A stretch of 64,000 nt of DNA from Camelus ferus. Its lineage: Eukaryota. Each line of letters begins with the position of its first letter. The stretch's first letter is position 1. Below are positions 1-56,295 of this stretch, piece by piece. Where the stretch lies: contig NC_045704.1 in assembly GCF_009834535.1 (NCBI RefSeq), positions 60,078,001 to 60,142,000 of the forward strand. Reading direction: 5' to 3'. The notes below the pieces were generated by a model, which was given only the letters and a program-made list of their open reading frames with translations, did not search any database and was not told where the DNA came from. Position numbers and translations under genes: made by a program.

Positions 1-789
1 GTGGCTACAGCCCAGCCAGCACAGGCGAGCCCTGAGGAGCCCACCCTAGAGATGGCGCAAGTAAGACTGAGATGAAATTACCAGTCCACAGCCAAGGTCC
101 CCTTGGAGCTAGGCTGACCCAGATGCTAGGGTCAGATTGCTTTTAGGGAAGCTGGAAGGATATCAGAAAGACTGGACTTTTCCATCTTCATGTGACACTC
201 TGGGAAGTTCCCGTGCCTCAATTTACCTAAATATATTCTCCAGCCAGGCTGAGTTCCTTCTAGTAGAAATTACCTGCAGAGGACTAGTAAAGTAGATTGT
301 CACTGTTTTTTCTTTTTTTTTTTAAATCTATAAAGTCCGCAAATAGGACCAGTCACTGGTGGTTAGTAATTGGAGGACCAGTAGACCTGGGGTTCCCCAC
401 TTGAATAAGCATCAAAATTATTATTGTTAAAAATAACAGAGGCCCAGGCCCAACCTAAGCTACTGAATCACCAGCATTTTATTTTTTGCAGCCACTCTGA
501 CCGCTTCTCAGAAAGTCCACGCTCTGGGAAAGGCAGAGCGGAAGGTAGAGGTCACACAACCCCAGCAGGGGTGCCTGCAGCACAGAGCTCGCTTTCCGCC
601 TCACAGCGGAGGTTCCAGCAGGCCGGGGAGAGTCACTTACATATGTAGTTGCTTCATATGTTTGCTTCCTTTTCCCTCATCCATCAAGACTGTACTCACC
701 CATTGAATCAATTGGCTTAGTGATATAAATTTTTTTCAATGTAAGTGGTATGGGCGATACGGAGAAACGGTCAACGTCTTCATGAAGCT

Positions 790-990
790 TACTAAGTGTG
801 CATTTCATCAGTTCTAAAATGCACTTTTTCCACACTTTAACACCTCAGAAATGGAATTGGGCATAACATTGAATGTGTCTGAGCATTTGTTACGATGTAA
901 CTGAGAATGTTTTTTCTTTCTTATGGTTTAGGAATAATGGTGCCAGTTAAAATCAGTAGTTATCTTCAAATTGATGAAATATGGTAGTGG
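790..990. mobile_element. Non-autonomous DNA transposon relic (TcMar/Tigger-like MITE)
   Basis: Imperfect terminal inverted repeats: catttcatcagttctaa ... ttcaaattgatgaaatatgg. Confidence 0.5.
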
Positions 991-1084
991 GAAAAGGAAC
1001 AACACACTTACATAAACAGGTAGCTGGCAAGAGCTTTGCTCATGCTTCTCCCTCTGCATGAGTAGTTCTGCACTTCTGCTTCAT

Positions 1085-1385
1085 CAGTTCTACTAACCAA
1101 TTACAACTCAATTCAAATGCCACCTCCTCCAGGAAGCCTTCTGTGTCACCCCAGCCCCACTACCCAATCTGGATTCCAAGTTCTTCCTTTGGGCCCCTGT
1201 GCTGGCCTCTAATGTATGCTTATCATGCTGTGTTACATTTATCCTGTTATCAGTCCACCCCTCCCCCAACTAGATGGTGAGCACCTTGAAAGCAAAGATG
1301 CAAGGTACACCTCTGTGCTCCTAGTACCTGGCACAGAGCCTGGTTTACAGCAGAAGTTCAATAAATGTTTGTTGAATGAGTAAAT
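1085..1385 (+). mobile_element. L2 LINE 3' end
   Basis: caaatgccacctcctccaggaagcctt ... cctggcacagagcctgg ... caataaatgtttgttgaatga is the typical L2 terminus. Confidence 0.8.
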
Positions 1386-1699
1386 TCTAAAGGGTTGGAT
1401 AGTTACAGGCCATAGATGTTCTGACCCATATGTGAGACCACAGGATTTCAGAAGAAAGGCAGAGTGCAGGGCTGGAAAGGCTGAGGAGGGCTTCTGGGAG
1501 GCAATGGGTTAGGAGCCATTCTGGCGGGATGGCTGGTGGACTCAGGGCTGCAGGGAGAAATGAAGACGTGGGCAGCGCTAAGACCTTCATTTCTCTTACT
1601 AGGTGTAGATCTGTGGTGACTGTCACTTGACTGGATTTTGTGTTTAATTTCAGGAAGCTGTGGGCCTCAACAACATTCAACATTATTCTTAATAATTAA

Positions 1700-1920
1700 C
1701 TCTAGGTGCTAAAACAATAGATGCTCAGGTTCAGAGAAAAGAGCAGTTCAACCCTCACTGAGTTCTCACAGGAAGTCCTGAATACACATAGATTTTGTGG
1801 TTTAGACCTCAGAGCTTCCTGCCAGAGCTTTACAAGCTTTAGCAAGTCTAAGCAGCCAGGAGAAGGCGGGCGGATGGGACCACAAACAACATGGTACCAA
1901 CATTTCAAAGCAGGTGCCTT
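1700..1920. promoter_or_regulatory. Candidate CD2 3' T-cell enhancer (LCR core homolog)
   Basis: Cluster of AACAATA (SOX, 1713-1719), CAGGAAGT (ETS, 1769-1776), TGTGGTT (RUNX, 1796-1802), CTTCCTG (1815-1821), ACCACAA (1879-1885), TTCAAAG (TCF/LEF, 1904-1910) and CAGGTG (1911-1916), 0.55-0.8 kb past the polyA signal. Confidence 0.6.
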
Positions 1921-2487
1921 CTTACCATCTATTGATTTAGAACCTCAACTGTAAACTGTTTTTTTTTTTTCTCCCCCACTTCCCCCAAAGTACAGCTAGC
2001 ATGACTGCTTGGTGCTGGTGGGGTCTGACCTTTTAATAATGGTCATTTAAGACTTGGGATTTGATTCAACTGAGTTGTCTCTTAGCTTGCCCTTCTGTAC
2101 ATTGTCTGGGAGGCTCACAGAACCTCCAGTGTTCATGGAGTCCCCTCTTTTGAAGGAGAGGTCTACAGATCACTGTGATCACGTCTGAGCAGTCAAGGAA
2201 ATGAGACCCAAACAGTTATGGTTTCTGGTGTTTCTCGTTGAAGTTTGCTCATAAAGGATTTCAATTCATTATATAAATCTACCAATAGGTTGTGGGTCCA
2301 GCTTTGCAGCTGAGACCTGGGGAGTGGAGTCTGGTTGTTCTAGTGGGGATTAAGGTGGCCCAGTTAAATTGGGGTGACCCAATTTGATCCTGCTGTCACA
2401 CCCCACTAACCAGTCTCTTTTGCATTCAGCAGCTGGATGCTGGGCTCCTTTCTAACAATGAGTAAACACTGGGGTCAAGTCAAGGCT

Positions 2488-2493
2488 TTTATT
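2488..2493 (-). other. CD2 polyadenylation signal AATAAA
   Basis: AATAAA on the minus strand ~460 nt past the stop codon. Its use as the signal is inferred from position. Confidence 0.7.
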
Positions 2494-2949
2494 TCACTTC
2501 TATTCCTGAGACAGTGAGCAGCTGTCCATCAGGCACATAAGAAACCCAATAGTGTCCCAAACAGGCAGGCTGCTCGCAGGGAGACACAGGCACAGCGACC
2601 GCTTGACATCTGACACCTGCACGTGGTCTGAGGCGATCTCTAGGATTTTGTACTCAGTCACTGATCATCCTAATATTTGCATTTTTATTTTTCTCTTCCT
2701 GGTGTGGTAGAGGTCTGTGTGGAGGCCAGAGATGCCAGACGTCAGATCACGTGGCTGAGTCAGAAGGTGCAGACATGATAGTGGCTCCTGAGCTTGGGAG
2801 CTGGCGATCAGGGTCTACTCATAGAACACCCGTGATGGAAGTGCGGGCGTGCACATCTGGAGTGGAGAAATTCCACAGTGCCTTCTCCGAGAAAGGACCA
2901 TTCCTATTGCTTTTCATTAGAAGAAGGTGACAACTGAGTCAGGAGACAG

Positions 2950-3273
2950 TTACACGTTTTCTTCGGCTTCACGGAGAGGTTTAGATTGAACTCGAGGCTT
3001 GGGGAGGGGAGGGCCTTTTTGCTGGTGACCTTGTGTTCCTGGGGTAGGAGGAGGCCTCTTTTTCTGTGCGTGCTGGCACACGGGGGCCAGGAGGCCCGGG
3101 ACGATGAGCAGGTGCCTGGGGGCGATGAGCAGGTGTTTGGGGACGATGGCCAGGTGTTGGAGGAGTTTGGGACATGGCTGGATTTGGAGGAGTTGAACCT
3201 GGAATTTGGTAGGACTTCCGTCCCCTTTCCTCGGCGGGGGTCACTCTGTTCACTCCTGTCTCCAGCTCCTCAT
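2950..3273 (-). CDS. CD2: CD2 exon 5 (proline-rich cytoplasmic tail); apparent +1 frameshift at 3075-3076
   Basis: Acceptor ttattgttgcag|AT; starts DEELETGVNRV...ERGRK. As assembled the frame stops at 2983-2981 (337-aa protein ending ASSSI). Removing one base at 3075-3076 gives QHAQKKRPPPTPGTQGHQQKGPPLPKPRVQSKPLREAEENV with a stop at 2952-2950 (347 aa), matching the CD2 tail. Confidence 0.93.
3098..3160. repeat. Coding 21-bp tandem repeat (3 copies) in CD2 exon 5
   Basis: gggacgatgagcaggtgcctg / ggggcgatgagcaggtgtttg / gggacgatggccaggtgttgg. Confidence 0.85.
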
Positions 3274-6200
3274 CTGCAACAATAAAAACCTCTGAAGAGT
3301 TTTCTTGAAAAGATATGATCAAGATCAATGCAACTATTTACTGAGCATGCCTCCTATGTACAAGGTGTCATGCCAGCTACTCTGGTGCACGCGATGAGGA
3401 AGCAGAAGCCACCTCTACCCTCCAGAGATTCCAGGTCTTGCAGGGGAGACAGAAATGCCCACCTATCAAGGGAGAGTGAGAGTCCAAGGCTTTAGAGAAC
3501 TCAGGGAGCCAAAGGCGAGATGTGTGAAAGGCTTTAGGTCTCTCGAGAACAAAGTGGGCACCCAGACCCCAGAGCCCTGACTCCAAGTCACCCCAGGGGC
3601 CACACCTTGAGAGCACCTCAGGGTTCTAGCCCTTGTCATGGGACCTAAGTAGTCAGAGAAGACATTGTCAACTACCTGCCTTCAGGTGGGTCTTTCTGTT
3701 AGATCTGCCTTTCCCCCAGTTCTCCTGTAATGTGACCCACATTCATTCTGGTGAGGGGTTGGGTTATATGCAAGGAGTTTTTAGTTCTTAGAAACAATAG
3801 TTTCCCAGAAATTCATAAGCAAGCGCAGTCCTCTTGGGCTTGGAAAGAAAAGAATTCCTCCTCTGGTCACCCCTCTGGGATTTTCTGCTTTCTGTGATGG
3901 CAGTCCATGAAGACAGGCCCACGACTCACAGTAATGTAATTTTTCCTTTGCTGTTTTAAAATGACACAGGAAATCTGTGTAGATTCTCAGATGCTCTAAG
4001 CCTGGAGGTTCCCGCTGGCCCGCTGGCCCTCTGGCCTCCGTTGGGCTACAGGTTGGGTAATCTGGTCCCTGTGCCCAAAGCCATCATTGCAGTGCTCCGG
4101 AGAAAGCTCGGAAGAGGGGCTCTCCCGGGGTGCATGAACCGCTGCTCACGTTGGTGCAGGGGTGTGAGGCTTAGGAAGCACACGCCCGCTCTGAGCATCG
4201 TCCTGCAACTTTGGGTGCTAATGCCAGTTCAGACGGCCTCTTTCAACTGCTAGAAATCCAGGCCTGGGGGCTTTAAATCTGAAGACTCAAAGTCAAACGT
4301 TGTGGTTTTGATGTGGAGAGGCTGGTGTGCTCGAAGCACAAAAGTAAAATGCACAGAAAGGGAGAAACAGTTTCTGTGCCACCTTTGGTGCCTCCAGGTA
4401 GCAGAGGTCAGGCCAGGAGGCCCCAGGAGAGGGCTCTGGCAATCCCAGTTCCCAGCTGCAGGGCAGCGGGCGGTCCTTTTGCATCTCCATACGGCAAGCT
4501 TGGGCTGGCCGTTTGCTTACTCTTCTGTTCACCCACTGTTTTGTTCATTTGGTTTTTGAACATTTTCCCCCCATCTTCTAGGTGTTAGGTGCCTGTTGCT
4601 AAGTGGCAGTGATGGCTCAGACACAAGCATTGTCCTTAGGAAGCCAAGCAAGTGGCTGCAACGACCCGAGACTGCGAATCACAATGTCAGTCTCTGGTGA
4701 GGACCCAGGGCCACCAGAGAGGTGCAGACAAAGAGCCCCATGAGTTCTTGGAGGAGCGGGGTGTGGCCAACTGGCTGAGGCCTCAGGCTGGCTTGGCTCT
4801 GTGCAGCCTGCTGGGTCAGAGCAGGACGGGGGACCTGGAAGCCCATGCCTGCAACTTCAGCCCCTGCCCACATGGCTGCTTCGTGGAATTCCTCCAACCT
4901 CAGTGCTCTCCTCCCTCCCCATATCTCCTGGTTACTCAGCCCTGGGCCAGGACTAGATTGAAGCAAGCAGGCGCCCAGGGCACAAAACCAAAGAAGGCCT
5001 AACTCCTGGGGTTGTGCAAGGGCAGGGTCAACTCTGAGGGGGAAGATATCCTCAAGTTTTGCACCCTGAGCTCCAGGTTCACCTTACCCTCATCCTAACT
5101 CAGCCTCCTGGCCGTAGAATTTGGGGCACATCGTTTGACCTCATTGAATTAAACTTCTGTGTCTGAATGAATATTATCTATCTCATAAGGTCACTCAGAA
5201 AGTTGAGTGAGATAATGAATATAAAGAAATATATATATAATATAAATATATTACAGAGATCAGTGCCTGGTACAGCCAACTGCTTTGTCAACTTGAGCCA
5301 ATCATCACGCTGGCCAGTCAGCCTGGTGAAAGTAGAGATTGCCTTGTCTTAGGTGACATGCAAGGTCCACCTTGGAAGGATGCGTGATCTTTGACCATTA
5401 GGCAGAGAAGGAAAGAGCCTCTGCAGGGGGATGGGGGGCCGCGAACTGCCAGAGCAGGGCCCAGAAGTGAGGAGGCTGTGGGTGCCGATGGGTCTCCACC
5501 AACAATTCTGTTCCCCTGGAGCGGAGAGTGTGTGTGAGACGGTGGTGGAAGCGCGGGGCCATGCTGGGGGCAGGGGTGTAGCGGGACATGAGGCGGAGGG
5601 GCAGTGGCCTGAAAGAGACCTGGGGAAAGATGTCTAATTTGAGGAAGCCAGAGCCAAAGGTGGTTCAAGGCCACCACTGCCTGGGGAGGTTCAGACCAGG
5701 TCATTCTTTGGGTGGTCCCGGAGGCAGCTGGCAGGGACACACTGGGCCTGCTCCTGGGAGAGACCCCGTGTAGGGGACCCAGTCCTGCTGTGAATGGGAA
5801 CTTGCACAGAACCTGAGGGACCTGCCCACCTGGCCGCATGTCCTGATGATGGCTGGGCAACACTTGAAGGACCCAGCTGCAACATGGGGTCCCAGCACCC
5901 CCGCCATTGTCCCAGCACAAGAACACCATTATCCAAACATGCTGCCTTGGTTGGCCTGGATACCCCTTGAGCCAGCTCCCCACTTATGAACATAACATTT
6001 TCATTCTTGGTGGGTTGTCAGGCCTGATTCAAGGAAGAAACACTTGCAGCCCTAACATACCCCCTCGAACAGCCAATTGGAAAGGGGTATTAACATCCAG
6101 TTTGGGAACAAATGTATTCCTGTGAGTCCCCGGTGCCCTGAAATTTTACCTGTATTCCCAGGAGCTTGGTCCTCAACACATCTCGGCCACCCCCTCAGGA

Positions 6201-6566: not shown

Positions 6567-6689
6567 CGTTTCTCCTACGGCTCTGTTTTTTCCTCTTGCT
6601 GATGTAGAAAATGAGTAGTGCCACAAAGACAAGGAAGACGGTGCCTCCTCCGCAAATGCCAATGATGAGATAGATATCCAGACCTTTCT
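6567..6689 (-). CDS. CD2: CD2 exon 4 (transmembrane segment)
   Basis: Acceptor cctcttgcag|AG, donor AACG|gtaagc, 123 nt. Encodes EKGLDIYLIIGICGGGTVFLVFVALLIFYISKRKKQSRRRN, near-identical to human CD2. Confidence 0.98.
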
Positions 6690-7575: not shown

Positions 7576-8564
7576 GAAGACAAGGGCCTGCTCTGACTAC
7601 AGCTCTGTGCACCGGCGTTTCTGGGAGCTGCTTCCCGGGAGGGGTGCTGGGCCGCCTGCCCCTTTGTGAGTCAACAGCAATCAGAGAGGCATCAGCTGGG
7701 GGCATGGGTCAGGGTGCTCGTACATCTGGAGAACAAATGGAGCTCAGCTCGGAGTCACAGGGAAACCCTTCTCTGGCCAAACGTTCCTAGGAAGATGCTG
7801 TTGCACGTGAAGCCAGGCCGGCCCAGGAGCAAGCCAGAGGCTCAGAAACCCAGCTACACAGATGTTCCGACGGCAGTGGTTTGTCGATCCTTGCTTTCTT
7901 TCCCAGGTCTCTCTCTGACCCAGAGACACAGCCTCTCTATGCGCTGTGGATGAAGGGGCTTCCCCTAGAGAAACAGGCATAATCCTAACCTTCTGTGAAG
8001 CTAGGCAGGGAACGGAAGGGGGGTCCCTTAGGCTCTGCCTGCTCGCAGGAAGGGCCAGGGCTGATGGCGGCCGCCTCGGGCTGAGCCGAGGACTTCCCGG
8101 GGTCTGGCCTAGAGGGCTGGGGGGCCCAGGGCCGGCCTCGGACAAGTTGGGAGCATCGGGCTAAGCCATGCAGCCACTTGCTCGTCTTCTCTGAGTCCTC
8201 AGACAGGGTGACCAAACCCTTATCTGGGCACCCTGGGGAATGTAGGACACAGTCTGGTCACAGGTGTGTCCAGCCAGGCCCTCCGGGTGCTTTCTGTGGG
8301 GGACGATCCAGTGTGTCTTGGACGGAGGCATCTGTGGCTCTGTCATTCAAAACTGTGTTCTCACAGTCGCTAAATCCAGCCACACTCCTTCCTGGACTCC
8401 TCCTTGGAGATAACGTGCCCGTGAATTTACATGGGGGAGTCCTTCCTGGGTGTCCAGACCTGTGCCTTCACCCTGGTATTTTGCTTCTAAGTTCATACTC
8501 GTCTCTTCTGAGCCAAGTGGTTAAGTCTTGTCATCGTCCTCTCTGCCTTGACCTCGGCCTTTTA

Positions 8565-9399: not shown

Positions 9400-9760
9400 T
9401 GCTCGTGGACAGAACACAGCAGAAGTGACAGGATCTCTTCCGCTCCTGAGATTAAGCTGTAAAAGACCATGGCTTTTGTCTCGAGCACTTGCTGTCACTC
9501 TCGCTCTGGCTGCTCTGAGGGGAGCTGCTGCCACACTGGGAGGCGGCCTAGTGCCCCCCCCCCCCAGTAGTGCCTGCACCTGACGGATGTGGCTGCAGCC
9601 CCTGCCAGTATCTTGACTGCAGCTTCGGGGAAGACTGAGCCAGAACCATCCCACTAAATCACTCCCAGATTCAGGTCTCACCAAACCTGCGAGACAATAA
9701 CTGCTGGATGTTTTAAGCCGCTAAATATGGGGTCATTTGTTATGCAGCAGCTGGTAACTT
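9400..9760 (+). mobile_element. MLT1 (MaLR) solo LTR
   Basis: ttgactgcagc...gagccagaaccatcccactaa ... gttttaagccgctaaatatggggtcatttgttatgcagca is the MLT1 3' signature. Confidence 0.7.
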
Positions 9761-10808: not shown

Positions 10809-11039
10809 CTGAACACCTGATGGGCATCGCGTTCGTTTCCTTGCTGACTTCGTTACTTGACACGCACTTGACGGATGCTTTCCATTTGGTGTTCCACTTG
10901 TATTTGATGATCTGCTGATCTTCCCTGACCTTGGACTCATTTATGTACAGTTCTAATTTAGAGCCATTTACTCTTGCTGCCTCACAGATCAGGGTTCTGT
11001 TGGTACAACTCCAGGAGATCACTGGTTTTGAGACCATCT
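10809..11039 (-). CDS. CD2: CD2 exon 3 (Ig C2-set domain D2)
   Basis: Acceptor tttgtttcag|AG, donor TCAG|gtgcgt, 231 nt, phase 1-1. Encodes EMVSKPVISWSCTNRTLICE...VKCVSSNEVSKE...IRCS with the four D2 cysteines. Confidence 0.97.
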
Positions 11040-13254
11040 CTGAAACAAAAATAAAGATCCAACTCATACTAGGCAATTTATAGATTGTAAAAGATGTACC
11101 TGTTTATACAGGGGAAAGTGAGTGAGTTTGGGGCCAGGAAACAATTTCAAAGACCCCTAGCTATTGTCAACAGTCATTTCTATTCTATTTTATTTATACG
11201 GCACATTCAGAACACGTTTATTTCCGATAGTTTATAGATACCTTATATTAGTAAAAAAAAAAAGTCATTTCAAATATTTATGTGGTATTTTATATCTTAA
11301 AATGTGTCCACACGTATGATCACATTATTCTAAGGAACAGAGAGGCCAATGTTTTCCTTCCTGTTTGCAGATGAAGTGCCCAAGGCTCTGAGGTTAAATG
11401 GATGGTCCAAGGGTACACACTGATAAATGGGAAGTCAGGAGAGGAGCCCACTTTTCCAAGTGCATGGTCAGTGCTATGGGTAAAGGGTTTACCACGCCCC
11501 ATCCCCTTATCCTCAGGTCCTAGGATGCGGGACTGGCGGCCGGGTGGGCAGTGCATCTAGTGCAGCTGGGAGCTTGACCTTGAGGAGTTGGTACGCGTGT
11601 GGCCTGAGGCCTTGGTCACAAATGAAAACCCCCTCCCCCAGCAGGGTCCTGGGAGCAGGGGCCAGGTGTGCAGTTCAAGCTCTGAGGCCGAGGGGAGAGA
11701 GCCCCTCCAGCCTCCCAAAGCTGCTCGGCCACACCCTGCACCCCACCGAGCTCACTCATAGGAGAAGGATGAGAAGGACATCCCCCACCTGTCACAACAG
11801 GGACGACATGTGACACAGCCCTGGCACGTTGATCATACCGACGATACTGGTGGTAGTTGTTACAGCCACAATCGTGCACTCCTTGCCTCTCCTGACACAA
11901 TACTGTTAGAAGGCTGCATCACAAAAGACAAGGCCGTGGCCTTGGCATCAGTTGGGGAGGGTCCAGATCCTTCTTTACCACCTCCGAGCTGTCCAGTCAG
12001 CTCATTCTTTTCTCATCCTTTCCTCTCTGTCCCCAGACTTGCCACCTTTCTCATTCAGTGTCTTTCCATTCATTATGCAAATACATAAGTTTTTTCTTTT
12101 TTTTGGTGATTCCCTCCCTCCATGACTCCCAGACAACAATGTCTTCCCCATGAACTTTCCCACCAAATTCCATCTCTTTCCCAATATACAGGCATGCAGA
12201 AATTAAGTTTTCTTCCTATCCCAGAACTCAGAGTGACCCAGAATGAAGAGGGTGGAAAAACATCATCCTACAACAAGACAGGGTCAGTGGAGAGTCTAGG
12301 AGTTGAGCCAAGGCATTTACTTGTCTCTTCAAAATGGAAATACTACTTATAAGAGTGACATCACTGTACAAATTGATAAAAATACCCCCAAAATTTCAAG
12401 AAGACTTAAAATCATTTGCTATTCTACTACCCAGAGTCAACAATTCTTAAAGTTCTGATGTATCTCTTTAGCAAATGTTTTCTATGCACACATGCACATA
12501 AATGTCTTAAAAACTAAAACTGGATCATATTGTTTGTCTGCCTTTTTTTCCCTTTACTGATCTATTTTGAAATTCTTTCCATTATAAACACCAAGAAATA
12601 CACATCGCCACCATCTTCTTAAATAATATATTCTTCATTTAGTTAATAAGTTTCTAACTGCTGGGGACTTTAAAATCCCTTCCAGCATTTCACTGATATA
12701 AACCACCCAGGGATGAGCAGCCTGTCAAAGTCATACATTTGTATACACCCTTTCTGTGAGATAGCTTCCTACAAGAGGTGTGCTTCAATCAAGCGAGCAC
12801 ATCTCATAGGTGAGAATCCTTAACTCCAGGTTGCCAGGACCAACGCCTTCTCTACTAACATCTGCTTTTAAGGAGCCTTCCACTGCCTCTTCAGTTGGCG
12901 GCAGTGTTCCCTTGTTAAGGGGTTGTGGGTGCCCAGATTGGAGTCTGAGCAGCATGCAGGAACAAAGAGATGGCAGACAGCATTACACTGAGGAAGCACG
13001 ATTGCATCCCAGGTGCCCGAGGCACCTATGCTAAGTGTTTCCCTGAAGTCCTGTCCCCCTGAACATCCCATAGACTTATTTTTATGAAAGTTAGACTCAG
13101 AGCACACAGGGAATTGATCCAAGACCATGCGGCAAGTAACAGTGATCGGACTGCATATTGAATGCTGGACACACACACACACAGCAAGGTGGCTATCCTG
13201 TCATGGAATGATCTCCATCTTTTGGCCAAGGAGTGAGGGTTTATTTTTGAGGTC

Positions 13255-15041: not shown

Positions 15042-15347
15042 CTAGAATCTTCAAATCGAATAGTTTGTCCAGCACGTGTTTTCCTTGTGTGTCGTATACA
15101 GCTACCTTGTAGGTGTCTCTATCAGTGCTCTTCAGATCTTTAATTTTCAGAGTCCCATTTGTTAATATCATGTATCTGTCCATTATCTGCTGAGGTGTCT
15201 TGTTTCTTTTGAATTGTGCGACCTTGGTTCTGCTTCTGGACCACTGTATATCATCTATAGAATCACTCATTTGAAAATCAGGAATGTCCAGGCTGATGTC
15301 ATGGTTCAGGACACCAGAGATGACCTGCTTATTTTCAGAGACTGCAC
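15042..15347 (-). CDS. CD2: CD2 exon 2 (Ig V-set adhesion domain D1)
   Basis: Acceptor T21-aatag|G, donor CTAG|gtaagt, 306 nt, phase 1-1. Encodes AVSENKQVISGVLNHDISLDIPDFQMSDSIDDIQW...NGTLKIKDL...YDTQGKHVLDKLFDLKIL, homologous to human CD2 D1. Confidence 0.97.
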
Positions 15348-15504
15348 CTATTAAAAAAAAAAAAAAAAAAAAAAGACAGTTACTGAAGTCGTGCGAGCCA
15401 CTGCCAGGGAAAGCTGGGCTGTGACCTCTTTGCCTCTTCCACTCACTTCATGGTCTCCAAAAAAGTTTCTAATGGTGACAATGGAGACCCACACATCAAC
15501 TTAC

Positions 15505-15565
15505 CTTTAGTGGAAACAGTGAAAAGCAGAAGGCAGCTGGCTAAGATGTTACATGCGAGGCTCAT
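15505..15565 (-). CDS. CD2: CD2 coding exon 1 (signal peptide, MSLACNILASCLLLFTVSTK/G)
   Basis: ATG at 15565-15563, 61 nt, donor AAAG|gtaagt. Translation resembles the human CD2 leader MSFPCKFVASFLLIFNVSSKG. Confidence 0.96.
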
Positions 15566-34655: not shown

Positions 34656-34819
34656 NNNNNNNNNNNNNNNNNNNNNNNNNNNNNNNNNNNNNNNNNNNNN
34701 NNNNNNNNNNNNNNNNNNNNNNNNNNNNNNNNNNNNNNNNNNNNNNNNNNNNNNNNNNNNNNNNNNNNNNNNNNNNNNNNNNNNNNNNNNNNNNNNNNNN
34801 NNNNNNNNNNNNNNNNNNN
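34656..34819. other. Assembly gap (164 N)
   Basis: N run. Confidence 1.
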
Positions 34820-55837: not shown

Positions 55838-56295
55838 NNNNNNNNNNNNNNNNNNNNNNNNNNNNNNNNNNNNNNNNNNNNNNNNNNNNNNNNNNNNNNN
55901 NNNNNNNNNNNNNNNNNNNNNNNNNNNNNNNNNNNNNNNNNNNNNNNNNNNNNNNNNNNNNNNNNNNNNNNNNNNNNNNNNNNNNNNNNNNNNNNNNNNN
56001 NNNNNNNNNNNNNNNNNNNNNNNNNNNNNNNNNNNNNNNNNNNNNNNNNNNNNNNNNNNNNNNNNNNNNNNNNNNNNNNNNNNNNNNNNNNNNNNNNNNN
56101 NNNNNNNNNNNNNNNNNNNNNNNNNNNNNNNNNNNNNNNNNNNNNNNNNNNNNNNNNNNNNNNNNNNNNNNNNNNNNNNNNNNNNNNNNNNNNNNNNNNN
56201 NNNNNNNNNNNNNNNNNNNNNNNNNNNNNNNNNNNNNNNNNNNNNNNNNNNNNNNNNNNNNNNNNNNNNNNNNNNNNNNNNNNNNNNNNNNNNNN
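55838..56295. other. Assembly gap (458 N)
   Basis: N run. Confidence 1.

Follow-up and report, generated by a model that had tools for sequence, protein, structure and literature searches.

The extra base that shifts the reading frame of CD2 in a wild Bactrian camel assembly is very probably an assembly artefact, with both alleles of a synonymous SNP written in tandem

The last coding exon of CD2 in Camelus ferus, the wild Bactrian camel, as deposited, holds one base too many, and the locus raises the question of whether this base belongs to the animal or to its assembly. The stretch of DNA analysed here, referred to as the window, comprises 64,000 nucleotides of contig NC_045704.1 (positions 60,078,001 to 60,142,000), and CD2 is encoded on its minus strand. 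The preliminary description, made from the letters alone, had read the minus strand of exon 5 as CGT GTG C CAG, and both this sequence and its coordinates read as first described. It had offered two explanations, a very recent real change, which would give a natural allele of CD2 no longer coupled to CD2AP, or an assembly or sequencing error, which it regarded as quite plausible; the latter is borne out by other assemblies, DNA runs and mRNA. The extra base is best understood, with a probability of about 97%, as an artefact that arose during consensus or polishing in the assembly GCA_009834535.1, with no mutation of CD2 behind it. This is the chromosome-level wild Bactrian camel assembly BCGSAC_Cfer_1.0 (PMC8069558), and over 16,614 nt its sequence CM020776.1 (L004, L008) matches the window with 100% identity, the letters GTGCCAG included. 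The preliminary description had also taken the animal for a camelid, and rightly.

The gene itself is well defined (Table 1). Every junction is AG/GT, all introns are in phase 1, and exon 5 begins at base 3273 behind the acceptor ttgcag. The features expected of CD2 are all found: a signal peptide, an N-terminal Ig V-set domain and a membrane-proximal Ig C2-set domain. A search with the V-set exon gave best matches named CD2 and returned camelid CD2 proteins. Spliced mRNA contigs that join exons 1–5 confirm the five-exon structure with its canonical splice sites, and both of them (L006, L007) cross the junction of exons 4 and 5. The true stop codon, TAA at 2950-2952, is in frame when the doubled letter is counted once. 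The QQKGPPLP[KR]PRVQ block, by which the tail of CD2 can be recognised, is present in the mRNA and in all other assemblies, and it is out of frame in the window. A Pfam search found no model covering the tail, and a search of the PDB with its 42 amino acids gave a single chance match (E 3.6), the CD2 tail peptides in solved complexes being too short for the library. Pseudogenisation of CD2 in camels was also considered, and is rejected in view of the intact exons and splice sites and of the spliced mRNA. The window contains two runs of N, both far from CD2, at 34656-34819 (164 letters) and 55838-56295 (458 letters).

Table 1. Features of the CD2 locus and private single-letter insertions, in window coordinates. 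Doublet letters are the two alleles written in succession.
Feature	Position	Strand	Remarks
CD2 gene		-	five exons recognisable
CD2 exon 1, coding part	15505..15565	-	signal peptide MSLACNILASCLLLFTVSTK; intact
CD2 exon 2	15042..15347	-	Ig V-set adhesion domain, PF07686, E 1.4e-09; intact
CD2 exon 3	10809..11039	-	Ig C2-set domain, PF05790, 24 bits, at the cut-off; intact
CD2 exon 4	6567..6689	-	transmembrane segment and KRKKQSRRRN; intact; canonical AG/GT splice sites
CD2 exon 5, coding part	2950..3273	-	cytoplasmic proline-rich tail
Shifted reading frame PARTEKEASS...SSSI, then stop	2981..3074	-	spurious, made by the assembly; no orthologue match
First doublet	3077/3076 (site 3075..3077)	-	G+C; CD2 exon 5
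Second doublet	4594/4593	-	A+G; intron 4; older C. ferus A; GCA_048773025.1, dromedary and alpaca G
Third doublet	4426/4425	-	C+T; intron 4; older C. ferus C; GCA_048773025.1 T
Fourth doublet	3464/3463	-	A+G; intron 4, 190 nt upstream of exon 5
Fifth doublet	2258/2257	-	T+C; downstream of the ends of the mRNA contigs
Sixth doublet	743/742	-	T+A; downstream of CD2; older C. ferus A; GCA_048773025.1 and dromedary T

As assembled, the minus strand of exon 5 reads ...GGC CCC CGT GTG CCA GCA CGC..., with T3074, G3075, G3076, C3077 and A3078 on the plus strand, that is, GTG (3079-3077), CC (3076-3075) and AG on the minus strand. Its translation runs from (D)EELETG to GPPGPRV and then passes into PARTEKEASSYPRNTRSPAKRPSPPQASSSI, ending at a stop at 2981-2983. 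The extra base puts out of frame the conserved tail that starts with QHAQKK and ends with GPPLPKPRVQSKPLREAEENV and a stop. The other frame of the minus strand, one base further, translates over 2950-3078 as CQHAQKKRPPPTPGTQGHQQKGPPLPKPRVQSKPLREAEENV up to its stop, and in it exon 5 continues as QHAQKKRPPPTPGTQGHQQKGPPLPKPRVQSKPLREAEENV to that stop. The spliced coding range of the window is 1,045 nt long with a stop at codon 338, and CD2 as deposited has 337 amino acids against 347, its 31 C-terminal residues being unrelated. A homologue search with the 115-aa open reading frame as assembled returned no match, under a length filter that leaves out full-length CD2. The identity of the extra letter varies with the allele taken as reference. 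With GTG CAG, either of the two minus-strand C is surplus (plus-strand G at 3075/3076), in line with the preliminary description; with GTC CAG, the surplus letter is the minus-strand G (plus-strand C at 3077).

Comparison with orthologues reveals which of the two frames is the real one. Camelid CD2 tails follow the first frame of the window to ...GPPGPRV; at QHAQKK they pass over to its second frame, with which they agree exactly as far as the C terminus. The CD2 proteins of alpaca, dromedary, whale, pig, cattle, donkey, gibbon and mouse all continue as ...RVQH.QKKRPP...HQQKGPPLP[KR]PRVQ, and the QQKGPPLP[KR]PRVQ block is nearly invariant among the aligned mammals; the proposal that the downstream frame is conserved is thereby upheld by the alignment of mammalian CD2 tails. 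The camelid proteins compared are XP_006172570.1 and XP_010966476.1 of C. ferus and C. bactrianus (P0211), XP_010978998.1 of the dromedary (P0212) and XP_015102976.1 of the alpaca (P0002). P0211, which has 347 amino acids and is common to C. ferus and C. bactrianus, agrees residue for residue with the five exons of the window when the doubled letter is counted once, and the tail encoded by exon 5 is identical in the C. ferus/C. bactrianus, dromedary and alpaca proteins. SH3-binding site 4 of human CD2 binds CD2AP/CMS, CIN85, CD2BP3 and CD2BP1 (review PMC7295915). At the position of this site the camel tail reads HQQKGPPLPKPRVQ, compared with HQQKGPPLPRPRVQ in gibbon and mouse; camelids, whale, pig and cattle have K for R at one position.

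The remainder of the tail has some peculiarities of its own. Three repeats of the HRPQ type (GHRPQTPAHRPQAPAHRP) are found in the camelid tail (window 3079-3273, minus strand), as in donkey, and two in whale, pig, cattle, gibbon and mouse. Camelids also read PPTPGHR and GPPGPRV where human-type CD2 has PPPPGHR, the latter being GYF/SH3 sites (PMC7295915).

Outside GCA_009834535.1, the extra base is absent from six other camelid assemblies. Across roughly 16.5 kb, divergence from the window amounts to 0.04% for the older C. ferus assembly (GCA_000311805.2), 0.39% for dromedary and 2.3% for alpaca. The older C. ferus assembly reads CGT GTG CAG at the site, and GCA_048773025.1, the dromedary assemblies GCA_000803125.3 and GCA_036321535.1 and the alpaca assembly GCA_048564905.1 read CGT GTC CAG. 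Four DNA runs, which belong to four studies and carry two organism labels, gave Logan contigs that match the window over 2800-3400 at every position but for one missing letter. In run X1 this is the letter at 3075, which leaves GTG CAG (the G allele), and in runs X2, X6 and X13 it is the letter at 3077, which leaves GTC CAG (the C allele). The preliminary description had stated that its frameshift would fall if other reads or assemblies lacked the doubled letter at 3075-3076, and this is what the DNA-run contigs and the assemblies have in common. The transcripts agree with them. The spliced mRNA contigs L006 (SRR33069700) and L007 (SRR33069687), which may share one study and may come from animals other than the reference, cover 1,044 nt of exons 1–5 and show 0 mismatches there; their single gap against the window lies at 3077, they carry the C allele, and they encode the full 347-aa CD2.

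It could still be argued that the reference animal carries a private but real +1 allele of CD2, heterozygous or homozygous, which has lost the last 41 residues and with them the PPLPKPRV site for CD2AP/CIN85. The base does stand in the deposited assembly, a duplication of C on a GTG CAG allele would suffice to produce it, the shifted frame is open for 31 codons, and a minor allele could escape the Logan contigs, in which minor variants are lost and from which the presence of a form can be read but not its absence. Against this, the base is absent from all other assemblies, DNA-run contigs and mRNA contigs examined. In the word index the flanks are present in 20 runs, the best of which has 0.90 of the sampled words, and the 60 nt that span the site (4 sampled 31-mers) gave zero runs among the matches listed. 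No +1 form, as a real frameshift allele or a pseudogene would show, was found in the DNA-run contigs, the mRNA contigs or the runs listed. Nor would such an allele account for the fact that precisely the alternative allele of a SNP was inserted, or for the five like insertions that lie in non-coding sequence within 3.9 kb. If it were true, it would be a natural tail-truncated CD2 devoid of CD2AP/CIN85 docking, and its position at a SNP would be a coincidence. This reading is very improbable, and the proposal of a natural allele uncoupled from CD2AP/CIN85 finds no support, given mRNA contigs that are identical in the five exons and encode an intact PPLPKPRV tail, and given the signature of an artefact.

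This signature is a doublet of alleles. The letters GTGCCAG of the window are both alleles, GTG and GTC, of a synonymous Val SNP written in tandem. Both alleles exist: G in run X1 and the older C. ferus assembly, and C in runs X2, X6 and X13, in GCA_048773025.1 and in the mRNA. The two haplotypes of 2800-3400 predicted from such a doublet are likewise both seen in public runs, one in X1 and the other in X2, X6 and X13. Letters of the window that are missing from all other Camelus and alpaca assemblies compared were defined as private. Five private, isolated insertions of 1 nt occur in 16.6 kb, and a sixth appeared when the comparison was extended to 32.6 kb; set against two other assemblies over these 32.6 kb, GCA_009834535.1 has no private deletion. 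All six insertions are allele doublets, with one letter found in the older C. ferus assembly and the other in GCA_048773025.1. Five of the six are non-coding. They all fall within one block of 3.9 kb (742-4594), and the remaining 28 kb or so of the comparison contain none. Among the other Camelus assemblies 94 of 16,670 columns are variable; by our own estimate, a random insertion has a chance below 0.006 of lying beside a variable column, and the chance that all six do so is less than about 1e-13.

These figures bear on a further explanation, namely a random single-base sequencing error of the homopolymer type, unrelated to heterozygosity. CC is a run of 2 nt, indel errors occur in long-read assemblies, and true homopolymers do differ between the window and the older C. 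ferus draft, namely the T run at 15375 and the G run at 9565. However, a random error would neither choose SNP sites nor cluster, and the six non-homopolymer insertions all hold both alleles, which leaves this explanation with hardly any probability, even less than that of a real allele. The idea that the extra base is real and that the frame is restored by RNA editing or programmed frameshifting can be discarded: it has the intact downstream frame in its favour and nothing beyond, whereas the DNA contigs of four runs, with which the mRNA contigs agree, already lack the base, and therefore no restoration is needed.

The older C. ferus assembly (L003) has oddities of its own with respect to the window, a private 10-nt insertion beside a G run in intron 3 (window 9361) and TT for AA just before the acceptor of exon 2 (15351-15352). 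Each of these is probably a mistake in the draft.

The model that emerges for the artefact is as follows. The Val codon that precedes QHAQKK is polymorphic in Bactrian-type camels, GTG or GTC, with no effect on the protein. The reference animal is presumably heterozygous across the 742-4594 block, and the assembly would have written both alleles in succession (GTG+C CAG), adding one base and shifting the frame. We infer that the doublets arose in a consensus or polishing step at heterozygous SNPs. The true gene and its mRNA encode a normal 347-aa CD2, the tail of which retains HQQKGPPLPKPRV, the counterpart of the human CD2AP/CMS and CIN85 site. Polishers are reported, in general, to fail often in heterozygous regions, with frameshifts in coding sequence among the consequences (PMC8092372). 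The errors described in that paper, on Hapo-G, resemble the present case in the heterozygous block, the mixed haplotypes and the coding frameshift; the camel signature differs from them in its specific form, with both SNP alleles in tandem, a form of polishing error of which no description was found in the literature searched.

The annotation of the locus has its own record of the problem. The protein collection places the 347-aa P0211 on the GCA_009834535.1 locus, where the deposited DNA yields 337 amino acids at most, and the NCBI title of the protein is 'LOW QUALITY PROTEIN: T-cell surface antigen CD2 [Camelus ferus]'. NCBI gives the label 'LOW QUALITY PROTEIN' to models in which a frameshift or a stop has been repaired by changing the coding sequence relative to the genome. 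Two other deposited CD2 gene models are wrong despite intact exon 5 DNA. One of them, P0001 (EPY90185.1, C. ferus, on L003), leaves out exons 3 and 5 and takes in open frames of the introns (e.g., window 7988-8257), and the other, P0104 (KAB1273776.1, dromedary, on L002), includes a spurious exon of 38 amino acids that matches the open reading frame at about 11619-11918 of the window.

Since the same doublet signature covers all six private insertions, heterozygous SNPs appear to have been rendered as two letters in GCA_009834535.1. Each doublet of this kind that falls within an exon gives rise to a spurious +1 frameshift, which matters for any use of this assembly, and the allele-doublet signature is the one result of wider use. 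For the biology of CD2 the extra base has no consequence: the CD2 of the wild Bactrian camel is ordinary and intact, and its CD2AP/CIN85 site is conserved.
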